A model generated the notes under the pieces. That model was not told the origin of the DNA. It ran no database searches and saw only the letters and a list, made by a program, of their open reading frames with translations. Positions 1,943 to 63,960 of a stretch of DNA of 64,000 nt are shown piece after piece; positions within the stretch are counted from its first letter, which is position 1; each line of letters starts with the position of its first letter. Location: positions 1-64,000 of the forward strand of contig QPMI01000437.1 of assembly GCA_004431415.1 (NCBI GenBank). Direction: 5' to 3'. This stretch comes from Cyanophora paradoxa CCMP329 (lineage: Eukaryota > Plantae > Glaucophyta). Position numbers and translations under genes: made by a program.

Positions 1943-2598
1943 TAGAGGAGGGCGTACGACTTAAACTCGCGCAGCGCCGCCTGCTCCTCGCTGAGGTTCT
2001 CTGACTTCATTCGATCGCTGTAGGGCTCGGGCGGCGTGCCCTCCTTGACGTGCATCCAAAATAGATGTAAGCACTTCCTCATGAGCTTGATGTACCTCTC
2101 GTCCCGTCTGACGTACCACGTTTGCACGCGCAGAGGAGTGAAGCAAAAAAGTTCGGCCCACTCGCGGCCCGTTATGTCCAGCAGGCCCTGGAGCTGGGGC
2201 ATGTAATAAGTTGGGACCTTTTCGTAGAGTTCTTGTTTGTAGGGGCATTTTATTTCAAGTATACGATCGCTTCCAATCAGCCCGTCCGGGCTGCCCGCCA
2301 GGAAGGGCAGTTCCTTATGTTCGTGCAATCCAGTATGTTGCACGTCCACGTTGTTGTTCGACGTTTTGTAGAGAGAGACCGCGAAGGGCTCATAGTCATG
2401 CCCGTAGGTTAGCGCAGGGTTGTCGAAGTTGTTTTCCTCCGCTATGCCGCTTAGCTCCGCCCAGAGGCGGGCCCTGGATTTCCAGGGGTTTATGCCGCAC
2501 GCAGCCGCAAAGTTCGAGGCAGTTAGCTTTTCACGGCGCGCCGCGTGCCACGCTGCGCTCCCCTGTTGCAAAGTCTCGCAATTTGTATCGGTATGCAT
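1942..2598 (-). CDS. YqaJ-like viral recombinase / lambda-exonuclease family nuclease
   Basis: Motifs QGSAAWHAARREKLTAS, YGHDYE, LAGSPDG, LEIKCPY, YMPQLQGLL; intronless. Confidence 0.9.
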   Translation of the reverse strand: MHTDTNCETLQQGSAAWHAARREKLTASNFAAACGINPWKSRARLWAELSGIAEENNFDNPALTYGHDYEPFAVSLYKTSNNNVDVQHTGLHEHKELPFLAGSPDGLIGSDRILEIKCPYKQELYEKVPTYYMPQLQGLLDITGREWAELFCFTPLRVQTWYVRRDERYIKLMRKCLHLFWMHVKEGTPPEPYSDRMKSENLSEEQAALREFKSYALL

Positions 2599-2648
2599 AG
2601 CGTAGCCTCGCAGTAGCGTTTAGAATTTCTTGATGTGTGCAATTGCAA

Positions 2649-3346
2649 ATGTCGGATGCAGAGGAAGCGCCCAGGGACGTGATCGCACAGTTCATAGATC
2701 AGGTCAAGGACCTTAGACGCTGGGTGGTAGAGCAGGCCTCGCGACCGAATCGACAGCGCCAACCCTGGCCGGTGCTAGAGCTGGCCCGGGCAGGGTGGCT
2801 AGACACGCATTACAACTCTGGCGGGGCCCTTTACGTTCGGAGCCACGACGAGGGCAGGATTATCGACGAGTTCAAGCGCATCTGGTTCGCCCTGGGCTCC
2901 AAGCTCAGCATACTCTCGACCCTCCCGGACCACATTCGCATGCAAATCCTCGAGTGGTACGCGAAGGCAAGGGACTCGCAATGGGACGACGTAAATTTGC
3001 GCGACCTCTCGCGCTTGCGCTCGGCTGTGACGGCGTATGTCACAAACTATGATTATCACGTCAAAAAGCCCCAATTCGAAGTTGAGCCAATTCCGATGAA
3101 TCTGGTACCCCTGGGATGGGAAGAGTACCCCGAGTACTCGTGGAACAGGGGCCTCAACCCCCGCGCCAGGCCCTGCCAGCCCCGCCCGCCCCACCGATAA
3201 ACGCCCCCGCCCCGCGTGACGTCAGACGGGACATACGCGAATGGGAGGAGTGGAGCAACGACCCGAAGAACTGGCTACCCGGGGAGGCGGAGATGCGGAA
3301 GCGCGCGAGGCTGATGCCCGGCGACAGGTACCCCGACCGCGAGTAG
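2649..3346 (+). CDS. Hypothetical protein, paralogue A (frameshift in C-runs at ~3157-3197)
   Basis: ORFs 2637-3200 and 3116-3346 together align with 3381-4118 (LPDHIRMQILEW vs LPAQVQQRIIDF; EWSNDPKNWLPGEAEMRK vs EWMDDTSHWVQGEAELRK). Confidence 0.6.
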
Positions 3347-3380
3347 GGGTACAGGTATAAATTCTCACCGAGCCGCGAGC

Positions 3381-4118
3381 ATGGCGCGAACACGCGAGTC
3401 CGACGTGCTGTACAACAACGGCGACCTGGACGGGGAGATTCGACAGCGGAACGTGGACTTGGAGGATGCGAACGCAGTGCTGGAGGGGAGGCGCACGTCC
3501 TCAGGGGGCGGCTCGCCGGCGGAGAACTTCATGGAGCGCGTGCTCTACCTTGTGCGCTGGATTAGAGACGAATTCCACGACGAGCGAGAGCTCCCGGACA
3601 GGGAGATGATCAGGGCCGCGGGCTTGATGGGTATGACAGAGAACCCGAGATCGTACCTGAGGCGCGAACGCAGGGATCTGAACGGCGATTGGGCCGACCT
3701 GCAAGCGCTGTGGACGGCCTTTGCGAACCGCAAGAGCCAGATCCTTGCCCTGCCCGCGCAGGTACAGCAGCGTATCATTGATTTCGTAGCCCCCTGGCGC
3801 GACGAGTCCCTCCAGCAGCCATTCATGCAACCACGCTTCCTCTCCGGGCTCAGGAGCGCGTTCTTCCACTTGGCCGTGAGCAGCGACCGGTATTTCACAC
3901 CGCAGAGGATCGTTCACGGCGAATTCGGCATACCCCCCGAGTGGCTGAATTTTGCCACCGTACCCCCTTCCCCACCCGCCTCGAAGGCCCCCCTCCCCTA
4001 CCCCGAGCAGCGTGAGTCACTCAAGCGTCAGAGGGAGGTACGCGAATGGATGGACGACACCAGCCACTGGGTACAGGGCGAGGCCGAATTACGCAAGTTC
4101 GGAAGGTTCGGGCAGTAA
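3381..4118 (+). CDS. Hypothetical protein, paralogue B
   Basis: Intronless 245-aa ORF, tandem paralogue of the preceding gene. Confidence 0.65.
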   Translation: MARTRESDVLYNNGDLDGEIRQRNVDLEDANAVLEGRRTSSGGGSPAENFMERVLYLVRWIRDEFHDERELPDREMIRAAGLMGMTENPRSYLRRERRDLNGDWADLQALWTAFANRKSQILALPAQVQQRIIDFVAPWRDESLQQPFMQPRFLSGLRSAFFHLAVSSDRYFTPQRIVHGEFGIPPEWLNFATVPPSPPASKAPLPYPEQRESLKRQREVREWMDDTSHWVQGEAELRKFGRFGQ

Positions 4119-5929
4119 CAGCGGGGGGTACAGCATTCAGTTAGAGCCTGAGCATCGTTAGAGGCCGGGAGGCCCCCCGAGGGGTACACCGGCTGTTACT
4201 CCCCGCGTCGGTTAGTGCTAGCCCCCCTGTTAGTGCAGCGTGTACCTGATCGCAATATAACACCCAAACCTCCGCGACGCGTGACTCATGCAACCTCCGA
4301 GGGTTAACAATGCATTGACAGCGAAGGGGCAAGCTCGAGAGCTCAACGCTTCACAAAGGCCCACATATATAGGCCCGGCCCGTACGTACTAGTACTGCCA
4401 GGCTGGCCATGGCCATGGGTATACGTATGTATACCGTATACGGCCTGCAGGCTGGAGTCGAGTGGCAGACTGGCAGTCTGGCACACGTGCGCGTGCACTG
4501 ACACTTCCTGCCATAGTATACGTAGCAGAAACGTTCGCTAGCAGCGGGCGTATCCTACCGCCGTACACGCACATGCGCACGCATCGCAAGTACGAGTGCT
4601 GTGCTGTATGCACGCTAGCGCTAGCGCTGCAGCTGTCTTGAGCATGACCAGCAGCAGCGGGTTTGCAGTTGCCAGATCTAGAGCCAAGATGTGCATGTGC
4701 ATGCGGAGCTCGAGGCGTCAATCCTTCATCATGATCCTTGCGCATGCATATGCAATCATCGCCTTCGCGATGTTGACTGGTTTGTTGCTTCTACTATATA
4801 TTCTAAAACATTTGTACAGCGGATCGACGACCATAACGTGCATATGCATGCGCACTTGCAATTGCACAATTTTGCAAGTGTTATATATATGTATATTAAG
4901 TGTAAAACTCTATTGCCGCGCACGAGTCCCGTCCCGTACACGTGCGCATGCACGCGCGCTTTTAATTCACGCACGGTGCGCGGCGCAGAGGCAGCCGCAT
5001 TGCCCACGATTCCCTTGCTCGCTGGTGCTACGGATGCTATGGGCCAGGGCTGGAACGTCATCCGCGAGGGCCGCAGCAGTTTCTGTGTTGGCAGCTTCCA
5101 ACCCCGTCCGGCAGCTGGTTTTCCGCCAGTACAAGGTCCGTTCAACATATATATTCGAGCTCGAATCTCAGGGGCTTTTAAAGATAACTTGGCTCACTAA
5201 CCTGCATGATAATCATCACATTGCAATGCATATGTACAATAATAAGCAATGAAATAAAAATGCTGCGGCATGCAATTAATGTTCCCGTATGCAATGTCGC
5301 AGGAACTGGGACGAGCGCGTCTTTTGCATTTGGGAAGGGCTTCCATCGGGATCTTTTAACAAAATTGGGCTACAGGGAACCTCGTGGACAGATCAGAAGT
5401 GAGAAAGCATCATCGTTATCCTGATATCGATATCGACTTGACGCATATATATAGCTACACGAATTAGATAATTATTTATATTTATTGCTCGCAGATATCC
5501 ATTACTCTGTCTACGACGGATTCTTGTACGTTGGTCCGTACGTCGCGATTGACTTACTGAAACTAGTACAATTAGGGAAGCTGAACTTCGGAAATTGAAG
5601 CTGAGGAGGCGCTCCTCGGGCGGATTCCATATATACTTTTAGTATTCAATAGTGTTTATTTTCGCTCACGGGGGGCGGACTGGACTACGGGAGGGCACCA
5701 GGTGCAGATTTAGCTATAGATCTAGAGACAGAAGGTCTAGAGTGCGGGTAGGGGAAGTTAAAAAACAATTTGCTCGGATAGGTCTGGCCAGGCAGGGAGG
5801 GGGTTGCCCCCCTCCCCACGCGCCGCTGTTTCCAGCGGCTCGGCCGGACCATCGGGTAGGGGAAGTTAAGGGCAGGCCTGGCTCTATATAGGGTGTGACT
5901 TCTGGGTCTAATCAATATCTTCGGCCCAA

Positions 5930-8809
5930 CAGGCACCAGGAAATACATCGCTCGTGTGACGCCAACTTGTGAGAGCCAGTTTGTGGCAGGACAGCCCACA
6001 ACTACGGTGTTTGGTAGCGTGTGGGCCAGCGCGAACGTCAACGACACGTACCCATACGCTTCTGCATCTTTGTTTGGACCTCCACGTATAAATGAAACTC
6101 GCGACGCTTTCAGCGGGAGCCAGCTTCCACAGCTGCATCCGGCAACTGGTGCACCTGTTGGGCTTTTCTACAAGGGAGCGTCCTTCGAGTTCGTTTCTTT
6201 TGTTATGTATATTTCCGCTCGAAATTCACTGGCCCATGGTAATGACATCGATATCGATAACAACTCTCAGCAATGTGCACGCAATGGCGGCAGTTTCTAG
6301 TACGCGACTCTACTTTCTCAGCGGAGGCGACAGCGTCCTCCATTCGCAAGACGTACGTATACGTGTATCGTGTGCATTTGCATGTGCCACACAATTGCAA
6401 TTGTACACGTGCACGCGTGGTTGACATCAACTGGCGCTCGCGCAGATCGGATATGTTACGCTCACAGATGGTGAACATTTTATTTTAATAAATATCTTGC
6501 ATTTGACGATGAAGATCACGATGCGTTTATTGAGTCTAATCTCATTATTGCTTTTACACCGGCGCAGGAATTGTCCGAACATACTCGGACTGGGGGGCGT
6601 ATGCGAAGAACAACACGATGACCACTGTTTGGAGCAGCACCTGTCGAGACACAAAGAACTCTGTTTTACACTACAGGCCCCGAGGAATGGCGCACCACGG
6701 TGGCAAGCTGTATGTTATGGCCATTAAGTTCAACTGCAACAGCTCGGCGCCGGCCGACCCATCAGACATCCCCTTCAATGACGGCGACCTTCCAGAAGGC
6801 TCTGTTTCTGTATTCATTTTGCCAGCTGGCGGGGAAATCGTCCGGCGTGGCGAGGAGCGTTTCGTCGCCACGCTGCAAACTGGATACGCCAGCGGCCCGA
6901 TCGCTGGCACGCGTATATTCTGTCAGGGTCTTGCGCTTGATTTCGATGGCCAAGACGTTGCGATCTACGTACCCCAGGTGCCAGACGGGGCGGTCGCGGA
7001 TGCCGCAGCAATCCGTACACGCATTTTGAAGGTCACAATACCAAGCGCGGACGTCAACAGCCCTGCAGCTGCCACAGTAACGACTTTCACCGAGTTGCCT
7101 GCGGGAGTCGTCGAAGTCTCGGATGTGCCGTCGCAAAATGATCCGAACGCTTTCGCCACGCTTACGACCTGGCTCGACATCAAAGGCCTGGCGGTTGTCA
7201 GAACTAGGTGTGTCGATAGCCATATATACTTGAAGGGTGTCAAGTATTCATCCAATGACGAGACTGACTGAGAAATGCACATGTATGTCTGCAGTGCTGG
7301 AACTTGGAGGCTTGTCGCTCAAGTTTACGGGGTCAATAAATGCGACGGCTTTCCGCAGGAGTACCTCTGGTATTTCTGCCCATGGCCAGATTTTCCTGCA
7401 GATGATTATGAAATGGATGCGCCTCAACTCCGTTACATCGAGTCTTATGACTCCAGCGGCAAGCCGATGGTTGCGGAAAGGATCGATGCTGTTCCAAGGT
7501 GATGATATGTCACATTTCAATCGTTTAGAGGTCAATTCGCATAAATACTATAACTTGGAATTTACAACCCGTTGGCGTAGGCCGGACCCAAAGGCTGTTC
7601 CCGCGAGCTATTTTGGAAGCCGTCGGGTGCTGAAGTCCTTCGAGGATACCATCGAGGCGCCCTTTGTGGGGATCGCGAACGTCGGAACTCGGGACTTTCC
7701 CGTCTTCTACTCCGTGTGGGAAGCGCTGTACGTCTTCGCGCACCGGCTCTGCCTCAGCTGCCGGGCGCCCACCCCGACGCCTTCGCCAATCCCCACTCCA
7801 TCCGCCACGCCGACCCCTGTAGTGGCGGCTAGGTGCCGCGGTTTTGATTTCCTGTCAGATGTTTACGCACTGCCTGCTGACGTGCGCAAACGTTCTTTCA
7901 TAATCAGCGCTTCGAACTCAAGCTCGACAGGTCCGGATCCAGTGGTGTCTCGCCCAACTCCTCTCCCGGGCACCTCGACCCCGCCCTCCGTACCCGGATT
8001 CGAATCCGGACCCAGTGCCCCCACCGACCCGCTCCGGCCTACCCCGTCGCCATTTCGTCGTCCCTTGCCTCAATTGAAGCCCCTGGTTCTGGTGCGCGCC
8101 ATCGATATTGATCACGAACACGTTAGTTAATCACATGAAATATTGCTTAAGCGGTTGCTTTCCGATTGCAGCCATTCTTTCTGGCGACCGAAACACCGAA
8201 CGCTGTTATCGGAAACATGACCAAAGAGTCGCGAATCAAAGTAAGTATGCGCAGCTCAAACCGCTCGTATAAATGATTATGCATGCTACAACAATATATA
8301 GCTTTCAATAACGATCAAAGATGCTTAAGTGCTCCAATCAAAAGCAAGCGCAATTCGAATATTTGTTTCAGTAAATAATAATAACATCTTGCGCAGCCGT
8401 CCCCGAGGAACTTCACGCTCACCAAGGTGCGGTACTCATTTATATAATTATTTGATTTGCCTAGTTATAGGCTCATTTGCAAAGATCGGAACTGAAGCAA
8501 AGCGGTAATATCCGGAAGCTGATCATGACCCCTGAAGCTCACGGCTGAACCGAATCCGCCTCAGGATAAAAAGGGAAACGATGTGTACACGATCTCACTT
8601 CCTAGAGCAATTGCTGTCACAATTGAGGTAACATTGGCCAATAGTATCGTTCCTTCATTAAGGATATGCCTAATGATAATATTTTTTCAGAGACCACACG
8701 CCTCCGCTAATCCGGAACGATTCGTCGAAGTAGTCTTGACTGGAATTCTCAAGGTGCTTTTCTTACCCCGACCCCGTTGACCCCGTTCCATTTATGCCCC
8801 CCCCCCCCC

Positions 8810-8856
<47 letters not shown>

Positions 8857-9350
8857 ACCCCCTCCAACCCCCCCTTCCCCACCGCGCGCCAGCCCTAGCT
8901 CTCCGCAAATAATTATTTCCCGGCACGCGCACGCAAATCTGAAAACGTCGAAGAGAGACCTTCAGAAATCCGCAAAGCATATGCGTGACCACACAGATTC
9001 AGATCGCTTATATTAATTATGCGTTTCATTGCGGCAGTCTGGACAGGAGGTTCTCGTGTTCATTGAGAACGATGCTGGCGATCAGCTGGGCACGGCGCAA
9101 GTCTCTGTCACCACCAGAAACTTGAACGGCATCCTCACCCCAAGGGACATAGTTCTGACGTTTGGTGCTGAACTTTCCTCACTTATAATAATTGTATATA
9201 AATCTGCTCAATTTCGTGGAAATGCGCTTACAATTTCTCGGGCGCAGAGCCTCCGAATCTTCCTTCAGCAATCAATCCCCGAAGTGTGCCCCGGAATCTT
9301 TTGGACGCACACGCCGCATTCGAGGTCAACACGAGGGTGCGGCTGTGCGT
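5930..9350 (+). CDS. Multi-exon host gene, probably an extracellular protein with a Pro/Thr linker
   Basis: Protein-like segments at 5956-6170, 6618-7207, 7294-7498, 7600-7830 (PTPTPSPIPTPSATPTP) and 9048-9160, separated by AT-richer GT..AG introns; boundaries approximate. Confidence 0.35.
8813..8855. repeat. (CA)n microsatellite
   Basis: Uninterrupted CA run after a poly-C tract. Confidence 0.95.
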
Positions 9351-11570
9351 AATAAACGAGGAATATATATATATATAGAGGCGCATTCGAATTCGCGATC
9401 GGACATAAATACCTGAAGATGAAGAAGATTGAGAAGGCCCGGTCCGGACCGGATACCGATGATGCCTGCCTTCGAATTCTCTTTATAATTCTGATGCCTT
9501 ATAATTTGACTTTGGATGATTGCACTCTACAAAGCTGAGATTTAGACCTGCGTATGCTGATTGCATTCACTGGACTTTTCCGCCGTGGACCACATATATT
9601 CATATATTATTCATTGCGCATGCGTTCACTGATCGCACTCGCTGCGAATGTATTTGCGCGCAGTACAACCTGCGGATTGAGCCGGCGCGTAGGCCCGGAC
9701 AGGCCCCTTTCATTCCTTTCATCCTAGGCGGGGTGCGCGTTTAAACGTTTAACTTGTATCAAACTCCAGCTTAAAAACCTTTGCAATCTGCGAGTCTAAA
9801 TCGTTGATATCGATCGGAATCCTCGGCTGAAGCTCTCGCCATCGCGCAGGCCTTCCAGTGGTATCCCACACCTCCCTACGTGGCGATACAAGACATGAGT
9901 CAAAGTCAACAAGCGGCACTCGGAATCTCATGCTTCCACGCCTCCGGCACGCTGCGGCTCGAGGACGGGCGCCCCCTCCGCCTCGACGATCCCGCACTCC
10001 GCTCTGGCCGCGGCCTGCCCCGCAGCTTCCGCGTGCAGGCTGTCGCCCCGGACGGCTCCCTCCGGTTTGCGGTGAGTCTCGAGCCTCCCGAATTGTTGAT
10101 CGTGACCTCCATTAATATTGAAGAGTCGTTTCCCTGTAGACGTTCTATGGGAACACGCACAGACCGATCTTCCGTCCGCGCCCGTTCGTGCGGGTCGCGA
10201 CTCGCTCGTCGTCTCTCACCCTGACGCCGGGTGCGGCGCCTTCAATTTCTTGTCGATGCATTTCTTGTCAATTAAAGGTTAACGTTAACGACTACGACGC
10301 ATCGGCATCAGGCCACTTCCTGTACGTGGCGGAGGCGCCTTCGTGGAGTGCAGCTCGCGTGGAGATGGCGGCACGCGTTCGCAAGGGCCACTTTGTGTTC
10401 GTGGAGCCGCCGGCGGATCCGGAGCGCACGGGCGACGTCGATGCGAGCGGCGACGGCGGGAGGCTCAAGCTTGTGGCCGAGGAGGTGACCGCCGTGGAGG
10501 AGCTGACGGAGCGCGGCGCGTTCGGCTTCTGGGTCGAGGGCGGCGTGCCCGTCGTCAGCGGCGTCGCCGCGTCTGTCTCCGCTGTCTCCGGTGCGACGCC
10601 GACGTCGCACGCGTTTTAAAAAAACATGCCATGATGTGACGCCAACTTTACTGACGCCTTGGCGCGCGGCGTTTTCAGAATGGTACTTCAGCGAGGATGA
10701 GCTCAGGGGCAAAGCGGACTGGAAGGTCGAGCTCTTCATGCTGCTCCATTACTACCTGCACCAGACGGCCCTCCTCTCGGCCCGCCTCACGCACCCGTTC
10801 TTCCTCGCGCTGTCGAACAACCCCCTCGCCGCCTTCGAGCGCTTCGCGGGGGCGGCCGGCCACGTCTACGTGTGCGTCGCCGTCGGCGCCGCGCTCGCGG
10901 CGTCTACCTTGGCGGCGTCCCGGAGGCTGGCGTCTCCCTCGCGATTGAAGCGCGTGTGATCCATTTCGGCCGGGGCATGCGCAGATGTATCGATTGAATT
11001 CGGAGATAGTCAGTTATTCGATGTAGTTATATAATTAGGTGTAGTTTCCATTCAGGCGAATTCGAACGTTAGCCATATAAATTGAGCGGCCACTTCTGAG
11101 GTGGTGATCATGATCGCGTCAATGTAATTTGTAATTGTGCGATTTGCATTGGCAGCTTGCAAATGATCCGGATCCGGACTCCGGGATCCGGTCACACTGA
11201 AAATATTAATGCAATGCAAATGCCATTGGAGCCGCCGCCGCCGTTGCCGGAGCCGCCGCGGGCGACGCAGCTCGAGCCACCGTGGCACTAGCGCCCGCCC
11301 TGCCCCGTTGGACATTACGGCGGAGGCAGCGGCGCCGGCGGGAGCAGCAGCGCGCCCGCCGGCGCGTCGTCGCCGGCCGGCGGCGGCCAGATTGCAAGGG
11401 CCGTGGAAAGCCCCCTGCAGCTGCCCTCTCGCGAATCGAGCCCCATGCCCAGCGAGCCCTCGTCGCCCTGGGCTTAATTAGGCCTGGCCCACCGGGGCCG
11501 TTCCGGGCCCTGGCCATGGTCCCTCTTCTCTGCCTCTCGCTTCTCGGACCGATATCAATTACAGAGGCGG

Positions 11571-25918: not shown

Positions 25919-28900
25919 ATGGGCTGCGGCGCCAGCACTTGTTCTGGCGGTCTAGGGGAAGTCGCCCCTTCGACTTCGGATCGCCAAGGTAACTCGAGAT
26001 CTAGAGCTGCAGCCGGAGCTGGGACCGAGCAAGCGGCAGATCCTGCCGCCGAGAGCAGCAGCGACGCGAACGACAGCGCTCGCCCACTCTTCGTCGATGG
26101 CTCGGGCGCTGGCGCGGACTCGGAGCTTCGAATTCTGCGGCGCCCAATTGACCCCTTCGTTAGCACGTGTCAGCTGGAAGACTTGCTAGGGATCTCGCGG
26201 GTCGAATCGGTGCATACCGTGGCACAGCTCGCGGGCCTCCTGCGTTGGGAGCGCGAGCGGGCGGCCGCGGCCGCGAGCCAGGATCCGGAGAAGTCCAAGC
26301 TGAAGGATCTGCGGATGCTGCCTGCAGTGGAGGACCTGGCGCGCAGGGGGGACGCCGATGGAACGCTGATGGAGATCTGCCTTGCCGGTACATACGTATA
26401 TACGCTTAGAATTGGATTCGAATTCGAATCCGACTGAGCGTTCGCGCGGCGCGCGCGCAGTTTTGGAGGCCGTCTCGAACGAATCCAGCCTTTGCCAAGC
26501 GGCGGAGCTCGCGGACGTGGCCACGCTGGTTCACACGGGCGATCCTAAGTTGTGCCGCTCGGTGCCCGCGGCCGCCCGCCCCGCCCCGCCCCCGCTCCTT
26601 ACTTTGCCCGAGCTCACTCCGCCCGCGGCCGTCGCCTCAGCTGGTGAACGAGCTCATCGGGAAAGCGAAGAAGCAGGCCCTGACGGAGCGCGGGGCCCTC
26701 GCTGTGCTCGCGACCGCCGTCGGGCACCTGCCCCCCGGCACCCTCTCGGCCGCCGACTGGAACATCGTCCTCGACTTCTGTTCGAAGCAGGCGAGCGCGC
26801 CGTCGCGCGCGCGCGCGGGGGAAGCTCGAGGGGCTCACCTGATTGAGCCGCGCAGGTGGAGAGCCTGAGCGGCAAGGACCGGTCGATGTGGCCGGGCCCC
26901 GACAACGAGGACGCCCAGCTCGCCCTCGAGCTCACGGCTTCCGTCCTCGCCGCGTACGAGGCCGCCTCGGGCGCCGACGGCGCCGCCTCCCCCGGGGGGG
27001 GCGTTCCCTCCGCCCCTTCGGATCCGGGCCCCGCCACGGAGCCCGATGGCGAGGGCTCTGCTCCGGATGCGGGTGGCGGCGTCGCAGCGCCCGTACCCTC
27101 CGGTCGGCTCCGGGGATCCCCCTTCCAGCGGCGCCGCTCGCCTTCTGATCGTGATTCGATGGCACGCAGATCTAGAGGGGCGCATGCGGATGGGCAACGA
27201 GCGAGTCCAGAAGATGGGCAAGCAGCTCGAGGAGCTGGAGAGGCGCGCCAAGGAGGGGCAGTGGTGGCGGGCGGAGGCGTCGGCGATGCTCGCGGGTCAG
27301 GCGCTCGCGAGCGCCGGTGCGAGCGGCGCGCGCTTCGGCGACGCCGTCCGTCGGTGCAAGGCCGCCGGTTCGACCCCCGTCCGCCTGCGCTCCCCTGCCT
27401 GAGCTCGCGCCGGCCTCGCAGTGCGGATCGTGGGCAGGCTGTACAAGGCGGGCAAGATCATCGCGGAGGGGGTCTCCTCCATGGGCGCCACGACCGTCAT
27501 TGACCTCGTGATCTGGGCCAAGGCGAGCCGGGCCGGCGCCTGGGCCCCGGGCAGCGTGGGGCGCGAGCTGACCGCCGCCACCGCAGGAGGCCTTAACGGA
27601 CGAGAAAGGGGGGGTGCTGCAAAACCTGCGGGAGCTGTGGGACGACGTGCGCACCGTTGCGGGGAAAGGCCCCCAGGGGCAGGGCGCCTGGTTCGCCGCG
27701 GGTCCCGCCCGGTCGCGCAAGGACGGCGCTCACGGACGGGGGCGCAGGTACCCGCAGGCGCGGCTGCTGGGCTCGCTGGCGGCGGGCGGGCACCTCGCGG
27801 AGCTGGACGAGCTGCTGCGGGACAAGGACGGAGCGTGCCTCGACGCCTGCGCGTCCAGCCGCCCCCTCACCCTCACCCTCGTGAACGCCCTTGTCCGAGT
27901 GCGCGCGCGCCCCGGACCTCTGCGCCCGTGCTGCCGACCAGCGCGCGCCCGCTGACGGGATCGCTCGGTGGCAGGTGGCGGAGGGGCCGGACGGGGCTCA
28001 GGCCGCGGCGGCGGCGCGCTGGATCGACCGGCTGGCGCGGCGGGCGGCGGACCTGGGAAGAGAGGGCGAGGCGGCGGTGGCCATCAGGGCGCTTGAGCAC
28101 GTGGAGTTGCTGGAGGACGCGTGCGGCCGCCTCGTAGCGCCGGAGGGCACGGAATTGCTCCAGCGGCTGCGGGCCTACGCGGGAGGTCGGCTGCAGCCGA
28201 CGGTGGAGAAGGCCGTGGGCTGCCTCGCAGTCTTCGCGCGCGGCGCGCGGCGCGCCGCGGACGGGGGCATCGCGGTTGTGAAGGAGGCTGCCGACATCGC
28301 GACGGAGATGGGGGGAGAGGGGGCGGGCAGGTTCCTGGTGGAGGCGGCGTCTGCGGTGAAGCGCACAGTCGACGACCCGCGCGTGCAGCTGGCGCTGCGC
28401 GTCTCGGAGGCGCCCAAGCAGCTCCTCAGTCTGACGGCCGGCCCCGCAACGGCCGTGGCCGCGGGCCCCGGGCGCTCGGTCTCTCCTTCGCAGCCACCGC
28501 CTCCCGCGAGAAAGGTTCGGCGGATGCCGCTGCGCCCGATCCCGATCCAGGCAAGGGACGGCAAGATAAACGGGTACCTGGAGGGCGTGCTGAAGGCGTA
28601 CAAGAAGAAGGTGCGGCCCTGCCCGTGCCCGCCGCCCACGCCACAGCGGCCCTCCCAACGTCTGCGGGCGGCAGGTTGAGAAGGCGCTGCGGCCGGTGAA
28701 GCGGGTGCACGTCTACGGGCGGAATGAGGACGTGGAGCAGGTCATCCACATTCTAACTGACCTCGCCGACGACCTCTGGTGCGCCCCGCAGCCGCCGACA
28801 TCCCGCTGCTGCATGCGTACGCTGGCCGCGGCCGATTTCGACTTTGGAACCTTGGCGCAGCTCAAAGGAACCTTTCCGAAACATTCGCACCTGCGTGGAT

Positions 28901-31900
28901 CCGCTGTGCCCGAGCCGCGCAGTCGTGCTCGTCGCAAGTCGTGCGACGGCGCGGGAGGGCGCGTTTCTGAGGGCCCTCGACGAGGGTGCGCGCTGGGGGC
29001 TGGCGCCGGCCGTGGGCCGCGCTTCCTCATGCGGGTTCTTTGCCTCACGGCGCCGTCAGCGGTCGATGCGGGGCGGGTCGTCTTTCAGCTTTATCTGAAC
29101 AGGGCGGAGCTCGTGCTGCGCGAGATGCCCGTCGGCGTCGACATGCGCCTCAGCCGCTTCACCCAAGTGCGGCTTCCGCGCACTGAACTCCAAGTCGCTT
29201 TTCGAGCTGAGTCCATGTCCGCAGCGGCAGCTGGAAACGGCGGCGGTGTGGGATGAAGAGTTCGAACCCCTGCAGGACAGGAAGAGCCCCCTGGAAGCTT
29301 TCGTGAACGGCGTGCAGCACATGTGCAGCCACCCTCCTCTGACCGCTAGCGCTGCACCGGCTGCCGGGCGCCATCGGATCCAGACGAGATGGCATCGCGG
29401 CGCCATGGGCGCTCAGCTCGGGCCGCAGCCCGAGGTCGCCAGCTGGGTCCTTGCTGAGTTCCCACCGGCGGATTTGGACACTCGCGTCTACTTCTGCCAC
29501 GCACCTGAGGACGCGGCGGTCGTCCGAAAACAGGAGGCTTTTCTGGCAGAGGAGGCCTCGTCCTGCAGCAGTTGGTCCGCCTGCGATCGCGAACGCACAA
29601 CGCCCGAAACGCGTGGGCCATTGACACGGCTCCGCTCTGCAGGTCTGCTGCCGACCACTTGAAGAAGGGCGAGCGCTGGGTCGACGTTGGTGCGTAGCTG
29701 CTGCAGCTGCAGCGGAGCTTCGCTGTTGCTGACCGTCCGCTTTGCAGTGGCCCACGCCATTCGCAACTGCACCCACTTCATCCTTGTTGTGTCCTCCGCC
29801 TTCAACGGGTCGCAGGTTCATGTCCATGCCATCTCCTTTAGCTTGAATCCTTCTCGCGTTCAAATAAATACGATTATACAAACGGTAAAATACAAAGTAA
29901 AGCCAGATTAACAATCTTACAAGCGATAAACAATCTTACAATCTTACTAACGAATCCTCCTTGCGGTAAAATAATACAAACGATTTTCCTGGCAGCACTG
30001 CAGGGAGGAGCTCGCCTACGCCTGCAGCCGGGACTGCGCTCTGGTCGCGATGTACCCCAGGCCGCAGGAGAGCGCCGCCGATTGGGTCGAGCAGCGGCTG
30101 CGGCGCGTGCCGCCCAGCCGCGTGCAGAGTGTCAACGCCCCGCTGGACCGGATGTCCCTTGTCTGCGCTCTCAGGGCCGAGCCTCGAGCTTATGATCAGA
30201 TGCAAGCCGCTAGCGCTGGGGGGAGCTCAGCTGCGGTTGGACAGTGGATGGGCGGAAGGCGGCGCCCCCCACCGCCGGAGGTGTGTTGCAATCGCATGGC
30301 CTGCTGACTCTCGAGCCCTGTCAAGCGAGCCCAATGCGCAGGCGACTGCACTTTGTTGGTCAGAGGCGGATGTCGCCGCCTGGATTGGCTCTCAGGGGCC
30401 CCTCGCGCAGTGCGGCGCTGGCCAGATTAACTGCGCTGGCTCTGGTATCGATAATTCTCGAATGCGCAGATTCGCGGAGCGACTCTCATTTGTGAACGGG
30501 AGGGGTCTCCTTTCCATTACCGACTCGGCCCTGCATCAGCTCGGGATCGACAACGCTGCGGCGCGCCGGCTGCTGCTGTCGAAGGTAGCCAACCTCTCCG
30601 AATCCGCTCTGATGGTTGCAAGCAGCGATAAGGTGCCGCCGGCGGAGTAAATATCTTTTCGCGGTCGAATTCGAAGCTGATGCAACGGGCAGGATGAGGT
30701 TCTGTGCTGGACTGAAGAAGAGGTCGTCGCCTGGGTCCGCTCGAAAGGGCCTGTCGCGCAGTGCGTATTGCCCCGCCCATGTCCTTTCTAATTATAATAG
30801 AGACAAAATTGTGTGGCACGTGCAGATTCGCCGACTTGTTCTCGTTTGCGCGGGGCTCGCTGCTGCTTTCGCTCTCCGACGCGGACCTTGAGTGCATGGG
30901 GGTAGACAACTTCCTGGCTCGCCAGCGGCTCCTTCAGGAGATTGCCAAACTCGCCGCGCGGAAGCCAGCAGGAGAGAGCAGCATAGCCATCATTGCAGCT
31001 GTGCGTTTGTGCTCTTTCTTATATCTGTCTCATTACAGCAACATGCTGAGTGCTGCGCCTTCGATGCATATGTCAAGCTCGATGACAACAAAGCCAAGAT
31101 TGAGGACAACAGAGCATTGATCACAAAGGTGCATCTCTGCGCTTTAATTTAATAACTTGCTTGCTTGAGCGCTGCCCTCACGTGCACGTGTGCCACGCAT
31201 GCCCAGTTCGCAAAGGCGCTGTCTGCGGAGCTCTTTCAGGACCGAGACCTCGCGCTCTACGTCCCGCCCCTCGCCACGCCGGATCCGAAGCTACCGTCCG
31301 ATGTGCCCCCCCGGCCCGCGCCCCTGTCCCTGCGAAAACCCCTCGACCCGACTCGACCCCTCCCGAGCAGAAACACGTGGACCTTCACATGAAGGCCGTG
31401 GAGTTCATGTCGGCACTGCTGCGCGGACAGAGCGGCGATGCAAAGGCGAAGAAGAAGCGCGTGCTGCTGCTCCTCGGTGTGGCGGGCACGTCGAAGAGCA
31501 CCTTCCTTCGCTTCCTGCAGAGAGACGTCTGCGCGCGGTGGGTGGCGGCGGCGGAGGACCCCAGCTCGCCGCGGCCGCCTGTCGCGGTGCTGGTCTCGCT
31601 GCCGCAGCTCGCCGCTGCAGCAGGCGGCGTGAGCGAGGGGCTGCGGCAGCACGTTGCGTCCAAGCTTGGCGTCGCAGCGGATGCGTTGCCGGCTATCCGA
31701 GACGAGTGCGCCTCTGTCACCCGTCTCAGTCTTTTTCGCATCTCTTCCCCTAATCCTGTCGACGTCTTTAGATTCGGACTCGTGCTTCTCCTCGATGGGT
31801 ACGACGAGATGGGCGCTGCGGGCGGCGTGAACCTGTGGCAGGCGAATCGCGTGTCAGACTGGGCGGGCGGAGCAGTCCTCACGTGCCGGACAGAGTTCCT

Positions 31901-34106
31901 CGCCTCTTTTCCCATGGGGCAGCGGCCCGAGGTGCCTCGAGCTCCCGCTTCCTTCCTTTCATGCTGTCTGTGGCCCGGCCCTGAACTCTTTCCCGTAGGC
32001 TTCTTTCGCGCCCACAGGAGAGGACGACAAGCCGAGCGAGGCGGGGCTGATGCAGCTGCACACGGTGCCCTTCACGAAAGACCAGGTCTGTAGCGAGCAT
32101 ACCGAGAATCGCGAGATCGCCCACGGAACGTGCGCTCCGCTGTGCAGCGAGCGAAGTACCTCGGGCACTACGTGGACCAGCACGCGGGCGAGAGGAGCGG
32201 GTGGACCGTCGGGGAGTACGAGGCGGCCCTCGCGAGTACGCCAGGCCTGGCCACCTTTGCCGAGAACCCCTTTTCCCTCTCCATGCTCGCCCGCGTCCTC
32301 CCCACCAAGTGCGCTTCACATTCCCGCGTGCCGTCTGGATGCCGAGGCGTGCTGTGTGCAGGACGGCCTCCGGAGGCCGGCTCGGAATCAGAGACCTGTA
32401 CCGCTTGTTCCTGCGGGACTGGCTGCTGCGGGAGCTGCACCGAAGAGGAGAGGGTCTGCAGACTCTCGATTCGGGCATCTGCGCGCCTCAATTTGACGAT
32501 GCGGCCGCGGCAGACTGGGCATCCGAGGAGGACACGGACATGAGTATTTGTGAGGAGGCTTTCGTGGCTGAGGGGATGGAGTTCTGCAGCCGATTTGCCT
32601 GCCTTCTCTTCCGCGTGCGCTGGGCTCTAGCCTATTTCACCCGTCTTAGACAGCCTGTGATTGCTTACATTTCTGCTTGACCGTCGGACTGTGCAGAGGT
32701 CAGCTAGCCAGGCGACCGTCCCGGACCAACGGGTCCCGAGGCTTCAGAAGACAGGCGCTGGCGTAAACTCAAAGCCTGCAGCGGCTGCCCCGAGTCCGGA
32801 TGAACGCGCCCTCTCCGATCTGCTTGGGGACCGCAAGAAGCTCTTCGTTCGCAACAGCTGCCCCCTGCGGCGGTGGCGGCAGGGCGACAAGCTCGGCTTT
32901 GCGTTCACGCACAAGACGTTGCAGGAGTTCTTGTCCGCAGAGGCGCTGCTTGCTTCGTTGCTGCGGACAGCAGATGCGGCGGACCTCATTGGTATCGACT
33001 GGTCCATAAGGTGCGCACAAGCTTGCACAGCAGCAAGCGCGCGCCGCCTGTGCCCCACATTATTATTATTTACACTTGTCGACATGTTCGGCAGGAGCTT
33101 TGTCGAAGAGTCAACGCTTGTCCGGTTTCTGGCGGAAGCCGTCCAGCACGAGCCACAGGCGCCATCGCGCAGTGCGGACGCCCTCGTGCAAATCGTGCTG
33201 CGGAGCCGCGTCGCACCTGGGAAAGCAATATCATATGCGGATGGAGCCCCGGAGGTCATCGCGGCAGCGAATGCGGCGACTGTACTCGTTGCCAGTTCGT
33301 CAATTTTCCTTTGCTATCTTTGCCGTGATTCAAGTTGCCAATTGCAGGCCACACCTCGCTGTCTGGCCTCGACTTGCGGGGTGTGCGTATACCCAAAGCA
33401 AACTTGTGGCGGCTGGAGGCGGCAGGAGCAGATCTAAGAGAGGCGGATCTGCGGCACTGCGACATGCACGAGGCGTGTCTATCAGGGGCGAACCTGAGCG
33501 GAGCGCGCCTGGACAACTGCCGAGTTGTGCAGCAGCCAGCTCTGCTTCACAAGGACGTAGTTACGGCCGTTGCATGGACGCCGGTGAGCGGACCAGCAAT
33601 TCACCCTCAATTCACGAGGTGAAAGCACCGCAAACGTGGCTGCGGCGCGCAGGACGGAAAGCGGATCGTGTCAGGGAGCTGCGATAAGTTGGTTCGGGTG
33701 TGGGACGCGGAGTCCGGAGAGCTGCTGCTGCCGCTGGAAGGCCACGAGGGTCAGGTCACCTCCGTGGCCGTGTCAGCGGTGCGCAAAGAACGTGGCGGGT
33801 CTATAACTAATTTGGGGTGGCACAGTAAGCAATGGCCTAGGGGAGCTTGCAGACAGGAAGGGTAGCAGAAAGCCGCAATAGCCGAGGGATCCTAACGACG
33901 TCGACCCTGACAGGATTGAGAGGCATGTGAGTGCACGAGGCCACAGGGCGCTGACTTGGCTGCGAGGGCGTGCTGCACAGGACGGAAAGCGGATCGTGTC
34001 CGGCAGCAGCGATGAGACGGTGCGGGTGTGGGACGCAGAGTCCGGGGCGGAGCTGCTGCTGTTGGAGGGCCACACAGACGAGGTCACCTCGGTGGCCCTG
34101 TCAGCG
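25919..34106 (+). CDS. Host NLR-like STAND protein, 5' part: MGCGAS - helical region - TIR-like - TIR - SAM - SAM - NACHT - pentapeptide repeats - WD40
   Basis: TIR (RVYFCHAPED..LKKGERWVDVVAHAIRNCTHFILVVSSAFNGSQ/HCREELAYA); SAMs (WSEADVAAW..GRGLLSITDSALHQLGI; WTEEEVVAW..GSLLLSLSDADLECMGV); Walker A GVAGTSKS; Walker B LLLDGYDE; FTHKTLQEF; ADLREADL/ANLSGARL; WD exons 33653-33778 and 33981-34106. Confidence 0.85.
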
Positions 34107-34179
34107 GTGCGCAAAGAAGGGGGCGGGTTTGGGGCCGCGAACAGTTTACGTAGGGGCCGTGAAAATACGTAGGGGTCTC

Positions 34180-34185
34180 AACGAC
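34180..34185 (+). repeat. Left target-site duplication AACGAC
   Basis: Identical hexamer at 62715-62720 directly outside the right TIR. Confidence 0.95.
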
Positions 34186-57647: not shown

Positions 57648-59021
57648 TTACAGATTAATTCGTCGGAGCCCATCTTTGTCAACAATAATGAAACTGTGCA
57701 TGAGAGCACGAACATTAACTGTGATTGTCTGGTCAGAAGGCATGTATAGAGTGAGGAAAGAGGAGGAGGAGTTCGTGAGATCAACATAGCCAGACTGGGC
57801 AATGTTGCGAATCGCTTTCTCTCCATCAACACAGAATGGTAGACCACTGAGGACATATTTGTCTGCAACCTTGTCCATATTTGAGCACTTGAAGGCATCC
57901 GCAATTAATTCGGCACCTTTGAGGAGAGGGATGGGCTCAGTAGCATAGAGACGTTGACCATTAATTTCAACAGTGAAAGTAATGTCTTTTGAGTTAGCAT
58001 GCGTTTTTAGGACACTGTGGGAACCATTGAAACCATCAATACCTGCGGCATCACGAACTGAAACAAGAAGACCATAGACAAGACCAGAGATCTGTGACAG
58101 GTTAATACGATTTGGTTGAGCATTGCCTTTTGCAGCAAAATTGACACTGTCTACGAAACCAATATCCAGAGCAGGAATAGCCATACCAGTGGTCTTCACC
58201 TTCTCAATGACAGTAGCAAACAGTTCATCAGAAACATTAATAGCATGCATGTAAAGACGAGGAGAAGTGACTTTAATTTCGGGGGTTGTTGTTGCACCAA
58301 TTCCAAAAGTGGTGATCTGTTGACCAACATGGGCAAGAGTAGCATTAGCAGTAGCACCAAGTCCATCATCCTCTGTCTTATCAGCAGCTGTTCCACCAAC
58401 AACTGGAAGAGCACGACCACCATAAGAAGTCTCAACATAACCCTTTCCAGCATCCTTGAACCAGACAGTTACCACCATTTCTCCTGAGAGAGCACCAAGA
58501 GGTAGGTAGTGGTTTAGCCATGGGACTGGGATTTCAGTGAAAAATGACCCACCAAGTCGGTTGGTTCCATGGGCAGGGATACCATGAACCATACCCATTG
58601 AACGCTTCTTCTTGGCGAGTTGATCCTCACTGTAATAGATAAGAGGGAAATGAGCAAGGAAATCAGAAGGCACATGGAAGGTGTAAGATCCATAGGTGAT
58701 TTCAAGTCGAGAGACAAGAGCACCAACTGGGCGAACGTATCCATTGCGAACAAGGTCGGTATCACCAGCAAAAGTGACAGCTGGAAGGTCAAACGCAAGT
58801 TCGAGTTTTCCACAGAAATTGTAGCGAGGGAGCTTGAAACTAATGCGATTTCCAGCATTATTCTCGAAAGTGTTGCTTGGGTTCACAACAACAAGAACTG
58901 GCTTCGACTTGGATTCAAGACCAAGCATGAGAGAGTTGTCCAAGAAGAACGCCTTGGCTTCTTCTGGGGTTGTTAGAGCTTCTTTCAGAGAAAGACGTTG
59001 GAGGGTCGAAGTAATATCCAT
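57648..59021 (-). CDS. Double jelly-roll major capsid protein (PLV/NCLDV-like)
   Basis: 457 aa; GNRISFKLPR..LELAFDLPAV, LVSRLEITYG, EIPVPW..YLPLGAL, GYVDLT; lies between ATPase and penton genes. Confidence 0.85.
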   Translation of the reverse strand: MDITSTLQRLSLKEALTTPEEAKAFFLDNSLMLGLESKSKPVLVVVNPSNTFENNAGNRISFKLPRYNFCGKLELAFDLPAVTFAGDTDLVRNGYVRPVGALVSRLEITYGSYTFHVPSDFLAHFPLIYYSEDQLAKKKRSMGMVHGIPAHGTNRLGGSFFTEIPVPWLNHYLPLGALSGEMVVTVWFKDAGKGYVETSYGGRALPVVGGTAADKTEDDGLGATANATLAHVGQQITTFGIGATTTPEIKVTSPRLYMHAINVSDELFATVIEKVKTTGMAIPALDIGFVDSVNFAAKGNAQPNRINLSQISGLVYGLLVSVRDAAGIDGFNGSHSVLKTHANSKDITFTVEINGQRLYATEPIPLLKGAELIADAFKCSNMDKVADKYVLSGLPFCVDGEKAIRNIAQSGYVDLTNSSSSFLTLYMPSDQTITVNVRALMHSFIIVDKDGLRRINL

Positions 59022-59075
59022 GATTATCTCTTTTATTATACTGCAACATAAAAAATTCACCAATGATCCTTGATT

Positions 59076-60086
59076 TTACGCAAAATTCGCAATAACCGGA
59101 TAAGATGGATGTGTTTCAGCCATTCTCCTCTTGAAGTATTCGTACACAGGATCACCAGCAGGTTCATCACCATATCGAATTTCGAAGGTGAGGTGGACAG
59201 GTTGACCCTCGAAATCAATTGGTTCATTAACTGCATTCACAATATCAACCGAAAATGTGGAGAGTCCCAGATTCTTGTTATAGTATTTATAAATCGGATG
59301 GGCTTCTGTCGAATTATAAACGACATGCTCACCATAATCTTTATCTGGAACAACGATTTTGTGGAAATATCCAGTGAGGAGACCATCACCACATTGCACA
59401 AGATCACCCAGCTCCTTTACTCTCACAAATAGGACACTATCCCTGGTCTTCTCGGGTTCAAATGAAGATATGATACCATGCACCATCGACCCAGTAAAGA
59501 TACCATCAGTCAGAGTATTATAAACTTGTGATTGGATTGGGGTGTTACCATATCTCCCAGGATCAAGACCAAGCAGTCGAGCAGAACTCAAAAACCTCTG
59601 AATCTGCGCCTGGGTTGGGTTTATTGCAGTTGAGAAAGCCAGGTAAAACGGTATGGTGGAATGGAATATTACTCGTTTCAGTGTATCATCCCATTTACAG
59701 CGAATTGCTACTGGTGGCTCTCTCAATGCAAGTTTGGAGTTAATTACATTCACCAGTTGTTGGTGGTTTTGAATGGGTGTGCTGCGACTTATCACAATGT
59801 GTTTCCATGATTCATAATCAGCAGCAGGTCGATCAGTTGGAATACCAGTGCTTCCTGCACCAGAATAATATTCAGACCAATAAAGGTAGATTGCATTATC
59901 AATTGTCACATCTCCTACTTTGGTTTCACCACTCACCATGGGAATGCTGTTATAAAATTCTGCTGAAACCAGTCTTACTGCTCTCACAAATTCATAGGTG
60001 CTGGGGAGGCGAGCAATAAAACTCGAAGTAGGTCCATCTCCCGAAATTGTATTGAAAGAGCTCACTTCGATGTAATCCACAGGCAT
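59076..60086 (-). CDS. Minor capsid (penton) protein 1
   Basis: YIEVSS..FIARLP..VRAVRLVSAEFYNS..LSTFSVDIVN..IDFEGQPVHLTFEI. Confidence 0.8.
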   Translation of the reverse strand: MPVDYIEVSSFNTISGDGPTSSFIARLPSTYEFVRAVRLVSAEFYNSIPMVSGETKVGDVTIDNAIYLYWSEYYSGAGSTGIPTDRPAADYESWKHIVISRSTPIQNHQQLVNVINSKLALREPPVAIRCKWDDTLKRVIFHSTIPFYLAFSTAINPTQAQIQRFLSSARLLGLDPGRYGNTPIQSQVYNTLTDGIFTGSMVHGIISSFEPEKTRDSVLFVRVKELGDLVQCGDGLLTGYFHKIVVPDKDYGEHVVYNSTEAHPIYKYYNKNLGLSTFSVDIVNAVNEPIDFEGQPVHLTFEIRYGDEPAGDPVYEYFKRRMAETHPSYPVIANFA

Positions 60087-62714: not shown

Positions 62715-62720
62715 AACGAC
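62715..62720 (+). repeat. Right target-site duplication AACGAC
   Basis: Matches 34180-34185. Confidence 0.95.
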
Positions 62721-62798: not shown

Positions 62799-63960
62799 GA
62801 CGGGAAGCGGATTGTGTCAAGGGACAAATGCTACAAATTTCTGGCGTGGGACACGGAGCTCGGGGTGGAGCCGCTGCAGCTGCAAGGCTTCCCGGACTTC
62901 GGCTTGGCAGTGGCGTTGTCAGCGGTGCGCGAGAGCAAATGGGGCTAGAGCAGCCAAGAAATCGAAGCTCCCCAAAAGCTGGGGGCACATGGGGACCCGA
63001 ACCACTGATTGGCGCTTGACCCATGGTGCGCAGGATGGAAAGCGGATTTCGATATGCCAGCGGATTTGGAATTCGCAAGATGAGAATGACAAGGATGAGG
63101 ATGAGAATGCCGAGGATGACGAGCCTGTGATGCAGGTGTGCACATGCATGTGGGACACGGACTCCGGGGCGGAGCCGGTACGGTTGCAAGGCCACTTCGA
63201 CCGGTACCAGGACTATAGGGTGCACATGTCGGCGGTGCGTGAGATCGAATGCACGAATGCAGCGAATGCACGGGGGTGCAAACCGCTGATTGGGGTGCGG
63301 GGGCGTTTTGTTCACGTGGTGCGCAGGATGGAAAGCGGGTTGTGTTAAATTGGTGCAATGAGAATAACGATGGCATGATGCAAGTGTGGGACCCGGAGTC
63401 CGGAGTGGAGCTACTGCGGCTGCAAGGCCACACAGACGGGATCACCTCGGTGGCTGTGTCAGCGGTGCGCGAGGGAGGGTGCATGGTTGATTATAAAGTG
63501 GTGCAGCGAGCATGCAGGGGGGCTTACAAATGAAAAAGGAGGCCGCGAAGACGTGATAAAAAAACTTTAAAAAGCAGAGAAAATCTGTCAGCCCTTGGAA
63601 AGTTTGCGATAAGATTCAGAGGCGAACCAGACACGATGATTATATAAGATGAGGCCAGAGCAGCCCAGTTCACGTGCTCAAGCATGCATGGGAGCTTGCG
63701 GATAATAAAGGCAAACACAAGGATGGGATGAAGAGTGGAGAGAATTTGGCAACCCTCGAAAGGGTCACAATGAGAGACGAGTGAGCAAGTACACATGGCA
63801 AAGAGTTCTGACTGGGCATGGCGCATGTGCACAGGACGGGAAGCAGATCGTGTCCGGGGGCTTAGACATGTCGGTGCGGGTGTGGGACGCGGAGTCTGGA
63901 GCCGAGCTGCAACGGATGCAGGGCCATACGGGCTGGGTCAACTCGGTGGCTGTGTCAGCG
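62799..63960 (+). CDS. Host NLR-like gene, continued WD40 exons (runs past the window end)
   Basis: Exons 62799-62924, 63034-63234, 63327-63464 and 63835-63960, each CAG|DGK...SA|GTGCG. Confidence 0.85.

Follow-up and report, generated by a model that had tools for sequence, protein, structure and literature searches.

The 64,000-nt stretch analysed here (the window), positions 1 to 64,000 of contig QPMI01000437.1 of the glaucophyte Cyanophora paradoxa CCMP329, carries on its + strand a transcribed gene of about 35 exons, in which units coding for TIR, TIR, SAM, SAM, NACHT, pentapeptide and WD40 domains follow one another. By analogy with known systems, we consider it probable that the locus encodes an NLR-like STAND receptor which would act as a TIR switch cleaving nicotinamide adenine dinucleotide (NAD). 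We call it NLR-like, not strictly NLR, because no leucine-rich repeat (LRR) family was found by Pfam; the repeats are of the pentapeptide and WD40 types. An earlier note, made from the letters alone, had proposed a receptor of this kind between positions 25919 and 33583. The features it listed were all found at or near the positions it gave, with scores far beyond chance, save for the end of the gene: WD40 exons run on to 34106 and resume at 62799, past an inserted element which the note had missed together with the interruption of the WD40 array.

The public model of the locus, called P0001 below (1776 aa; EukProt Cyanophora paradoxa tig00020660_g12507.t1), was retrieved by a representative-library search with the stop-free stretch 31371-31931, which includes the Walker A motif, an in-frame 66-nt intron and the Walker B motif; it was the top match, at 100% identity. 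Its exons map exactly to the window and agree with the introns seen in RNA; beyond these it has three in-frame introns more, and an RNA contig keeps one of the three. The features of the locus are as follows.

25919 to 26386, + strand: first coding exon, with the candidate start MGCGAS at 25919-25936 (ATG GGC TGC GGC GCC AGC)
26315 to 28610, + strand: N-terminal all-alpha domain, P0001 residues 1 to ~585, nine exons
28675 to 29350, + strand: first TIR domain (TIR1), exons 28675-28778, 28861-28985, 29060-29166 and the start of 29225-29574; P0001 residues ~588-740
29480 to 30160, + strand: second TIR domain (TIR2), exons 29480-29574, 29643-29689, 29748-29815 and 29996-30160(-30280); P0001 residues ~785-910
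30342 to 30632, + strand: first SAM domain (SAM1), joints 30280-30342 and 30632-30693 in RNA; the public model removes an intron at 30411-30470
30693 to 31000, + strand: second SAM domain (SAM2), exons 30693-30760 and 30826-31000, joints in RNA from three runs
31207 to 33294, + strand: module of the NACHT-type STAND nucleoside triphosphatase (NTPase) with helical and winged-helix parts, in a frame open across 10 RNA-supported introns
31476 to 31499, + strand: Walker A motif GVAGTSKS, in which Ser replaces Gly before Lys, and Lys and Ser are kept
31785 to 31808, + strand: Walker B motif LLLDGYDE, its D, D and E invariant in 25 homologues
~32901 to 32939, + strand: motif stretch FTHKTLQEFLSAE, within the NACHT module
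33350 to 33583, + strand: pentapeptide-repeat exon (Pfam 6.2e-20, and 4.6e-10 on P0001), joints 33294-33348 and 33583-33653 in RNA
33653 to 34106, + strand: two WD40 repeats in 126-nt phase-0 exons, 33653-33778 and 33981-34106 (Pfam WD40 9e-23 on P0001)
34186 to 62714, no strand assigned: Polinton/virophage-like element, 28,529 bp, ~39% GC, within an intron of the WD40 array
62799 to 63960, + strand: further one-repeat WD40 exons, 62799-62924, 63034-63234, 63327-63464 and 63835-63960, after which the array leaves the window

Between 25.9 and 34.1 kb the + strand is a mosaic of short open stretches with changing frames, as a eukaryotic gene rich in short introns would show. RNA contigs from four public runs (two studies; label 'RNA?') were aligned to positions 28400-34150. 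All 15 listed contig joints were bounded by GT..AG and skipped 53-180 nt, and the contigs thus derive from spliced RNA. The intron 33295-33347 (joint 33294-33348) was placed where a single contig aligns as two separate pieces, and the intron 31303-31370 from contig pieces or ends. One contig of 577 nt contains four joints and leads from the first TIR2 exon to the SAM1 exon; from SAM1, further contigs lead by way of SAM2 and the linker to the exon preceding the P-loop, and others tile to about 34183. Once the RNA introns are removed, no stop interrupts the reading frame between 29225 and the WD40 exons, and the spliced contigs tile 29385-34183 in a single open frame. The TIR2, SAM, SAM, P-loop, pentapeptide and WD40 exons are joined in one open frame; from TIR2 onward, contig tiling and the continuous frame place the TIR/SAM and NACHT parts together, not on different transcripts. 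The manual splicing of the earlier note agrees with the 15 listed joints and with the public gene model. A dynamic-programming gene model of 25919-29572 was set aside, since it had too many introns, one of which (29323-29442) is contradicted by an RNA contig, and the public model was used instead.

Pfam was run on raw open reading frames (ORFs) and stop-to-stop pieces as well, and exons were searched singly, the whole-protein tests being made on P0001. The raw pieces gave two SAM halves, a weak NACHT/AAA_16 P-loop, a strong pentapeptide repeat (6e-20) and WD40 repeats. No TIR domain was found by Pfam in the raw ORFs or the stop-to-stop pieces, a consequence of its division among several short exons.

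On the spliced protein, TIR2 was recognised by Pfam as TIR_2 (46 bits, E 9e-12, for a gathering threshold of 28) and as TIR (21.3 bits, equal to its gathering threshold of 21.3; 2.6e-4) within P0001 residues 780-925. All four of its introns appear as GT..AG joints in the 577-nt contig. The domain contains the motif HCREEL, the second Glu of which is encoded by GAG at 30008-30010 and is residue E859 of P0001; four paralogues all have the Glu-Glu pair unchanged. A TIR2 profile built from these four matched TIR domains of the PDB (Cat1, 7.5e-5; TIR-STING, 1.2e-3; AbTIR; TLRs), with the HCREEL Glu aligned to the catalytic Glu and HCREEL itself aligned with the WCWDEL motif of Cat1. The intact-looking TIR that had been read from the sequence, Glu codon included, is borne out by these matches, and TIR2 appears to be of the type competent for NAD cleavage (NADase). 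Three minor searches with single exons accompany this. Phmmer with the last TIR2 exon against the PDB gave as sole match RuBisCO, which was judged due to chance; the 95-aa TIR2 exon returned TIR families in a protein-language-model look-up (scores 0.80-0.88), taken as a lead only and not used as support; and a word search with the exon 29225-29572 gave no match among eligible proteins of only 64-204 aa, a range that makes it uninformative.

TIR1 gave no Pfam match on P0001 and no sequence match in the PDB. Alignment of its profile to that of TIR2 with hhalign gave a probability of 90.8% (E 1.2e-6, 122 columns). The AlphaFold2 (AF2) model of TIR1 has a mean predicted local distance difference test (pLDDT) score of 54 overall, with a core at 62-81; VIA-align of this model returned TIR domains in all the top 37 rows (Z 10-10.9, root mean square deviation 2.6-3.5 Å, 112-129 residues), and the top Foldseek matches were TIR domains too, weak ones (E 4.6e-3). 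Both segments thus show a TIR fold or profile. Where TIR2 has CREEL, TIR1 has FLRAL, i.e. Arg-Ala for Glu-Glu, so that Ala occupies the aligned catalytic position; this position is Ala, Ala, Ala and Ser in the four paralogues. The degenerate TIR described in the earlier note, with FLRAL for the expected CxxEL, therefore holds as a TIR domain, and from its residues TIR1 is a conserved, catalytically dead one.

The two SAM domains were found by Pfam in P0001 residues 915-1090, as two stretches matching SAM_1/SAM_2 (E 1e-13 and 5e-12); SAM2 alone scored 5e-11 for SAM_1 at residues 1004-1063. An intron position is common to SAM1 and SAM2, which marks them as a tandem duplicate. A complex prediction with four SAM-SAM copies gave no answer (score 0.02), which is neither support for nor evidence against oligomerisation.

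The NACHT-type motifs are LLLDGYDE, a sensor-like TCRTE and FxHKTLxEF. Among the 25 aligned homologues, 20 match the Pfam NACHT family PF05729 at E <= 1e-3 (best 1.4e-13), and in a comparison of the family profile with solved structures the best matches were the NACHT modules of NLRC4, NLRP1, NLRP9 and NLRP3 (E 3e-6 to 1e-2). The NACHT assignment stands on these results, membership being by homology and not by the protein's own score. The Walker A motif had been called atypical. The variant is indeed present, but is probably not a defect: G..G[TS]SK[ST] is common to about 16 GC-rich proteins among the matches (the eleven looked up are all from Cyanophora), with the canonical GK in every other relative. 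Its conservation in some 16 paralogues argues that function is retained; as judged from the alignment, the variant is a clade trait under conservation and not a sign of decay, and NTP binding by it is putative.

Downstream, the pentapeptide repeats (Pfam 6e-20) and WD40 repeats (9e-23) that had been seen by eye were both recovered. In the WD40 array each phase-0 exon codes for exactly one repeat of 42 aa, and on both sides of the element the exons begin (AG|GAYGGNAAR) and end (GCG|GTGCG) in almost the same way. A layout of one repeat per exon would allow repeats to be shuffled by gain or loss of exons. One of the first two exons past the element has an acidic 25-aa insertion.

P0001 belongs to an expanded family. 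Its closest paralogue, P0002 (2009 aa), has the same order TIR1-TIR2-SAM-SAM-NACHT-WD40, with Pfam TIR_2, two SAM and WD40 matches; P0001 and P0002 are the two paralogues with SARM1-type tandem SAM domains. In P0003 and P0004, TIR1/TIR2 stand directly before NACHT, and P0004 also has pentapeptide and WD40 repeats. P0006, P0007 and P0008 have one TIR domain and NACHT, WD40 repeats being detected in P0006 and P0007 (14-15 in each), while P0009, P0011, P0012 and P0017 have the helical N-terminal domain and NACHT. The earlier note had called for a count of paralogues; the matches include about 16 that are GC-rich and of the TIR- or N-domain-NACHT-WD40 type. Named relatives outside Cyanophora include Mycoavidus (a fungal endobacterium) and Modicella (a fungus of the Mortierellomycota). 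Several RNA contigs match the gene only in short parts and then diverge, leaving loose ends at 29124, 29160, 31246, 32259, 32442 and 34059; these look like transcripts of close paralogues, i.e. several members of the family would be expressed.

Ahead of the TIR domains lies a domain of about 590 residues, which the earlier note did not mention and which is conserved in P0002, P0009, P0011, P0012 and P0017. Its AF2 model is all helical (pLDDT 61), and Foldseek returned generic helical-repeat matches with E >= 8e-3. Pfam gave no match in this part of P0001 (P0011 has a weak ARM_5 match, 3.4e-4) and a protein-language-model look-up returned no family. The model suggests that the domain is possibly a helical repeat, for which ARM-like would be a tentative label.

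At the extreme N-terminus, the peptide MGCGAS, read directly from the sequence, is present at 25919-25936 and is of the N-myristoylation/palmitoylation type (Met-Gly start, Cys at position 3, Ser at position 6). In the public model translation begins instead at 26315, an internal Met 132 codons downstream of MGCGAS; the frame is open from 25808, with the Met at 25919 as the sole in-frame Met before 26315. The coding sequence upstream of 26315 (47 codons; exon residues 84-154) is 61% identical to P0002 residues 2-67, and the relatives P0007 and P0017 begin with MGCKSGK and MGSACCKK. An acylation-type start at MGCGAS is plausible on these grounds, and we lean slightly towards it; if it is the real start, the MGC N-terminus would tether the protein to a membrane. 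Three NACHT relatives that are not GC-rich, P0037, P0048 and P0053, also begin with Met-Gly (MGNTPTKQ, MGSYYANG and MGNRQSRS); their low content of Ala, Gly, Pro and Arg makes a Cyanophora origin improbable. Acylation at the N-terminus may thus be a recurrent trait of this NACHT clade, with a count of Met-Gly starts (6 of 53) that is not clearly above chance.

The GC content of the window is 63-74% up to about 34.15 kb, then falls sharply to ~39% until about 62.7 kb. The low-GC block is the Polinton/virophage-like element. It has terminal inverted repeats of ~1.37 kb that are 100% complementary, each terminus starting with a short palindrome (ACACATATG...CATATGTGT), and it is flanked by a 6-bp target duplication, AACGAC, at 34180-34185 and 62715-62720. 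Pfam identified in it a protein-primed PolB, a D5-type primase-helicase, an A32-type packaging ATPase and a weak rve integrase; other genes code for an HNH/AP2 protein, a patatin with an F5/8C domain, an AdoMet decarboxylase, and C1q-tailed and H-lectin fibre-like proteins. Two candidate capsid genes (57648-59063 and 59076-60086; likely capsid) had no Pfam match. That the block could be an assembly chimera or bacterial contamination is ruled out by the perfect inverted repeats, the 6-bp duplication and the series of WD40 exons on both sides. Without the element, the interrupted WD40 intron would be ~160 nt. The identity of the terminal repeats and the intact duplication indicate that the insertion is recent. 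An allele with the element in its WD40 array may make a product with a truncated sensor.

To our knowledge, no innate immunity has been described in this alga. If the locus works as the systems to which we compare it (plant TNLs, SARM1, bacterial TIR systems, and STAND proteins of the NACHT/APAF-1 type), the repeat region would hold the NACHT module in an off state, until a ligand or a disturbance releases it and permits nucleotide-dependent oligomerisation. The tandem SAM domains would possibly reinforce this oligomerisation, and the TIR domains would be brought together. The assembled TIR2 sites could then cleave NAD+, leading to its depletion or to a nucleotide signal, with growth arrest or death of the infected cell as the likely outcome. 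The dead TIR1 would most likely serve as a non-catalytic partner of TIR2 or as a scaffold.

Several points weigh against this NADase-receptor reading. Every functional step in it is taken by analogy. P0001 itself scores 17.6 bits on the Pfam NACHT family PF05729, below the gathering threshold of 26.7, and the Ser before the Walker A Lys departs from the consensus GxxxxGK[ST]. The best matches of the SAM domains are Aveugle and liprin, not SARM1: phmmer against the PDB gave, among others, the SAM domains of Aveugle, liprin-beta and DGK-delta at about 1e-3, and that of SARM1 at 0.12. The RNA support consists of short contigs with a depth of 2-6x, none of which spans the whole gene; coverage leaves a gap at 29168-29359, the region aligned leaves the 5' 2.5 kb (25919-28400) outside it, and the contigs of the WD40 region are unspliced across 33779-33980. 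Finally, the public model stops at the element, with only two WD40 blades ahead of it, and the allele may be defective.

This last point leads to the alternative that survives best, namely that the locus is a disabled allele or a pseudogene: the element would truncate the transcript so that no working receptor is made, and any function would lie with P0002 and the other family members. We regard this as a real possibility, though short of probable. Two WD40 repeats are left before the element, against 14-15 in P0006 and P0007; the first two WD40 exons past it look degenerate; one RNA contig is unspliced as far as the edge of the element, at about 34183; and the insertion, with its 100% identical 1.37-kb repeats and intact 6-bp duplication, is recent. 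However, the insertion is intronic, all of the ~35 exons ahead of it have correct splice sites and a frame free of stops and are transcribed and spliced, and a recent insertion leaves the ancestral function valid as a description of the gene.

A second alternative accepts the protein as functional but not as a pathogen-triggered NADase: the TIR domains would be protein-protein adaptors of the Toll/MyD88 type, or the protein would sense a metabolite or a stress through its helical N-terminal domain, as SARM1 does through its ARM domain. TIR1, which lacks the Glu and is nevertheless conserved, indicates that non-catalytic TIR roles exist in the family, and the large conserved helical domain ahead of the TIRs and the weak ARM_5 match of P0011 fit the sensor version. 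We find this alternative unlikely, since four paralogues all keep the Glu-Glu pair of TIR2 and the solved structures that this domain matches best (Cat1, TIR-STING and AbTIR) are enzymatic, since many paralogues with repeat-per-exon WD40 arrays are typical of non-self receptors, and since the fold match of the N-terminal domain is generic only. That gene prediction has fused two neighbouring genes, one for the N-terminal domain and the TIRs and one for the SAM-NACHT-WD40 part, as the gap at 29168-29359, the start of RNA coverage at 28400 and the lack of a contig spanning the whole unit would allow, is very improbable given the contig joining TIR2 to SAM1, those leading from SAM1 through SAM2 and the linker to the exon before NACHT, the continuous frame, the same full order in P0002, TIR1/TIR2 directly before NACHT in P0003 and P0004, and the loose RNA contig end that joins 28985 to 29060 inside TIR1, supporting the intron 28986-29059.

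An extension of the NADase-receptor reading would take all the parts jointly. The dead and live TIR domains would form a built-in asymmetric dimer, its NADase licensed only by the joint action, at a membrane, of two independent oligomerisers, namely a ring of SARM1-like SAM domains and a NACHT wheel; the family would be an independent glaucophyte form of TIR-STAND immunity against giant viruses or Polinton/virophage-like satellites; and the element in the sensor array would be a meaningful hit or a co-option, not a chance event. We hold the whole of this to be distinctly doubtful.

Glaucophytes are one of the three primary lineages of Archaeplastida, and in plants TIR plus a STAND NTPase is the core of TNL immunity. 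With the plant TNLs (TIR-NB-ARC-LRR proteins such as RPP1, ROQ1 and RUN1/RPV1) the Cyanophora protein shares a Glu-bearing TIR on the N-terminal side, a STAND NTPase and a C-terminal repeat sensor, and some of the structures that the TIR1 model matches best are solved plant TIR domains. Oligomerisation would, as in TNLs, be expected to assemble TIR NADase sites with asymmetric TIR pairs. The NTPase is NB-ARC in the TNLs whereas it is NACHT here (DGYDE Walker B; solved matches NLRC4 and NLRPs), and the sensor is pentapeptide plus WD40 instead of LRR. The Cyanophora protein also differs in its tandem TIRs, one of them dead, in the two SAM domains between TIR and NTPase, and in the ~590-aa helical domain that comes first.

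Tandem SAM domains assemble the SARM1 NADase. Like SARM1/TIR-1 (ARM-SAM-SAM-TIR), the Cyanophora protein has tandem SAMs beside a Glu-bearing TIR and a large helical domain in the same chain, and the TIR1 model superposes on the TIR of SARM1 with Z ~10. The order is reversed, however, the TIRs coming before the SAMs, and SARM1 has no NACHT-WD40 part. SARM1 is no nearer match to the SAM domains than Aveugle or liprin is (0.12 versus ~1e-3), and the helical domain gave generic repeat matches and no Pfam ARM match in P0001. The likeness is one of parts and does not amount to orthology.

The fungal HET-E/HET-D/HNWD proteins, and related bacterial and fungal NACHT proteins, resemble the Cyanophora family in having NACHT followed by WD40 repeats, in their lineage-specific expansion and in their highly similar repeat units. 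The effector is here TIR/TIR/SAM/SAM and not HET, HeLo or PNP_UDP, a pentapeptide block precedes the WD40 repeats, and only the Cyanophora clade has the Ser variant of Walker A. TeTIR-NACHT-WD40/TPR proteins (TEP1, NWD1 and NWD2) are reported from animals, with a few protist members and none in plants (bioRxiv 10.64898/2026.09.21.753143). These too have a TIR-type NADase effector before NACHT and WD40; by its description, however, TeTIR is an extended domain of 200-350 aa directly before NACHT, whereas the TIR here is of the canonical TIR_2 type, duplicated, and separated from NACHT by two SAM domains.

The literature searched gave no description of the TIR-TIR-SAM-SAM-NACHT-WD40 order, nor of TIR/NACHT proteins in Cyanophora, amphioxus being the sole mention of 'TIR-NACHT' in it. 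This agrees with the earlier note, which had not recognised the architecture as described. The combination of domains is thus described nowhere that we found, while the TIR-STAND (NLR-like) kind of receptor is already known.

If the NADase-receptor reading holds, a glaucophyte has TNL-type TIR-STAND and SARM1-type tandem SAMs in one chain with NACHT, which would mean that TIR and STAND modules were combined on more than one occasion in the plant supergroup. The protein would be a natural test case for two oligomerisation modules controlling one enzyme, and its conserved pseudo-TIR/TIR pair would make it possible to ask if an asymmetric pairing of TIR domains can be hard-wired. The family of about 16 proteins sharing the Gly-to-Ser change in Walker A would provide a handle on the innate immunity of this alga. 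The C. paradoxa genome is full of Polinton/virophage-like elements, which implies an unseen pressure by giant viruses.

Two minor observations remain. The 84-nt in-frame intron 30161-30244 of the public model is kept in RNA contig X2, which is contiguous over 29992-30278; its retention would add 28 residues after TIR2 and may represent an alternative isoform. On the - strand, the intronless ORF 1942-2598 encodes a YqaJ-like viral recombinase domain (E 7e-30). It sits in a block of 48-56% GC at ~2000-10000, where the neighbouring ORFs had no Pfam matches, and probably represents a further insertion, of mobile or viral origin, that lies upstream of the receptor gene.

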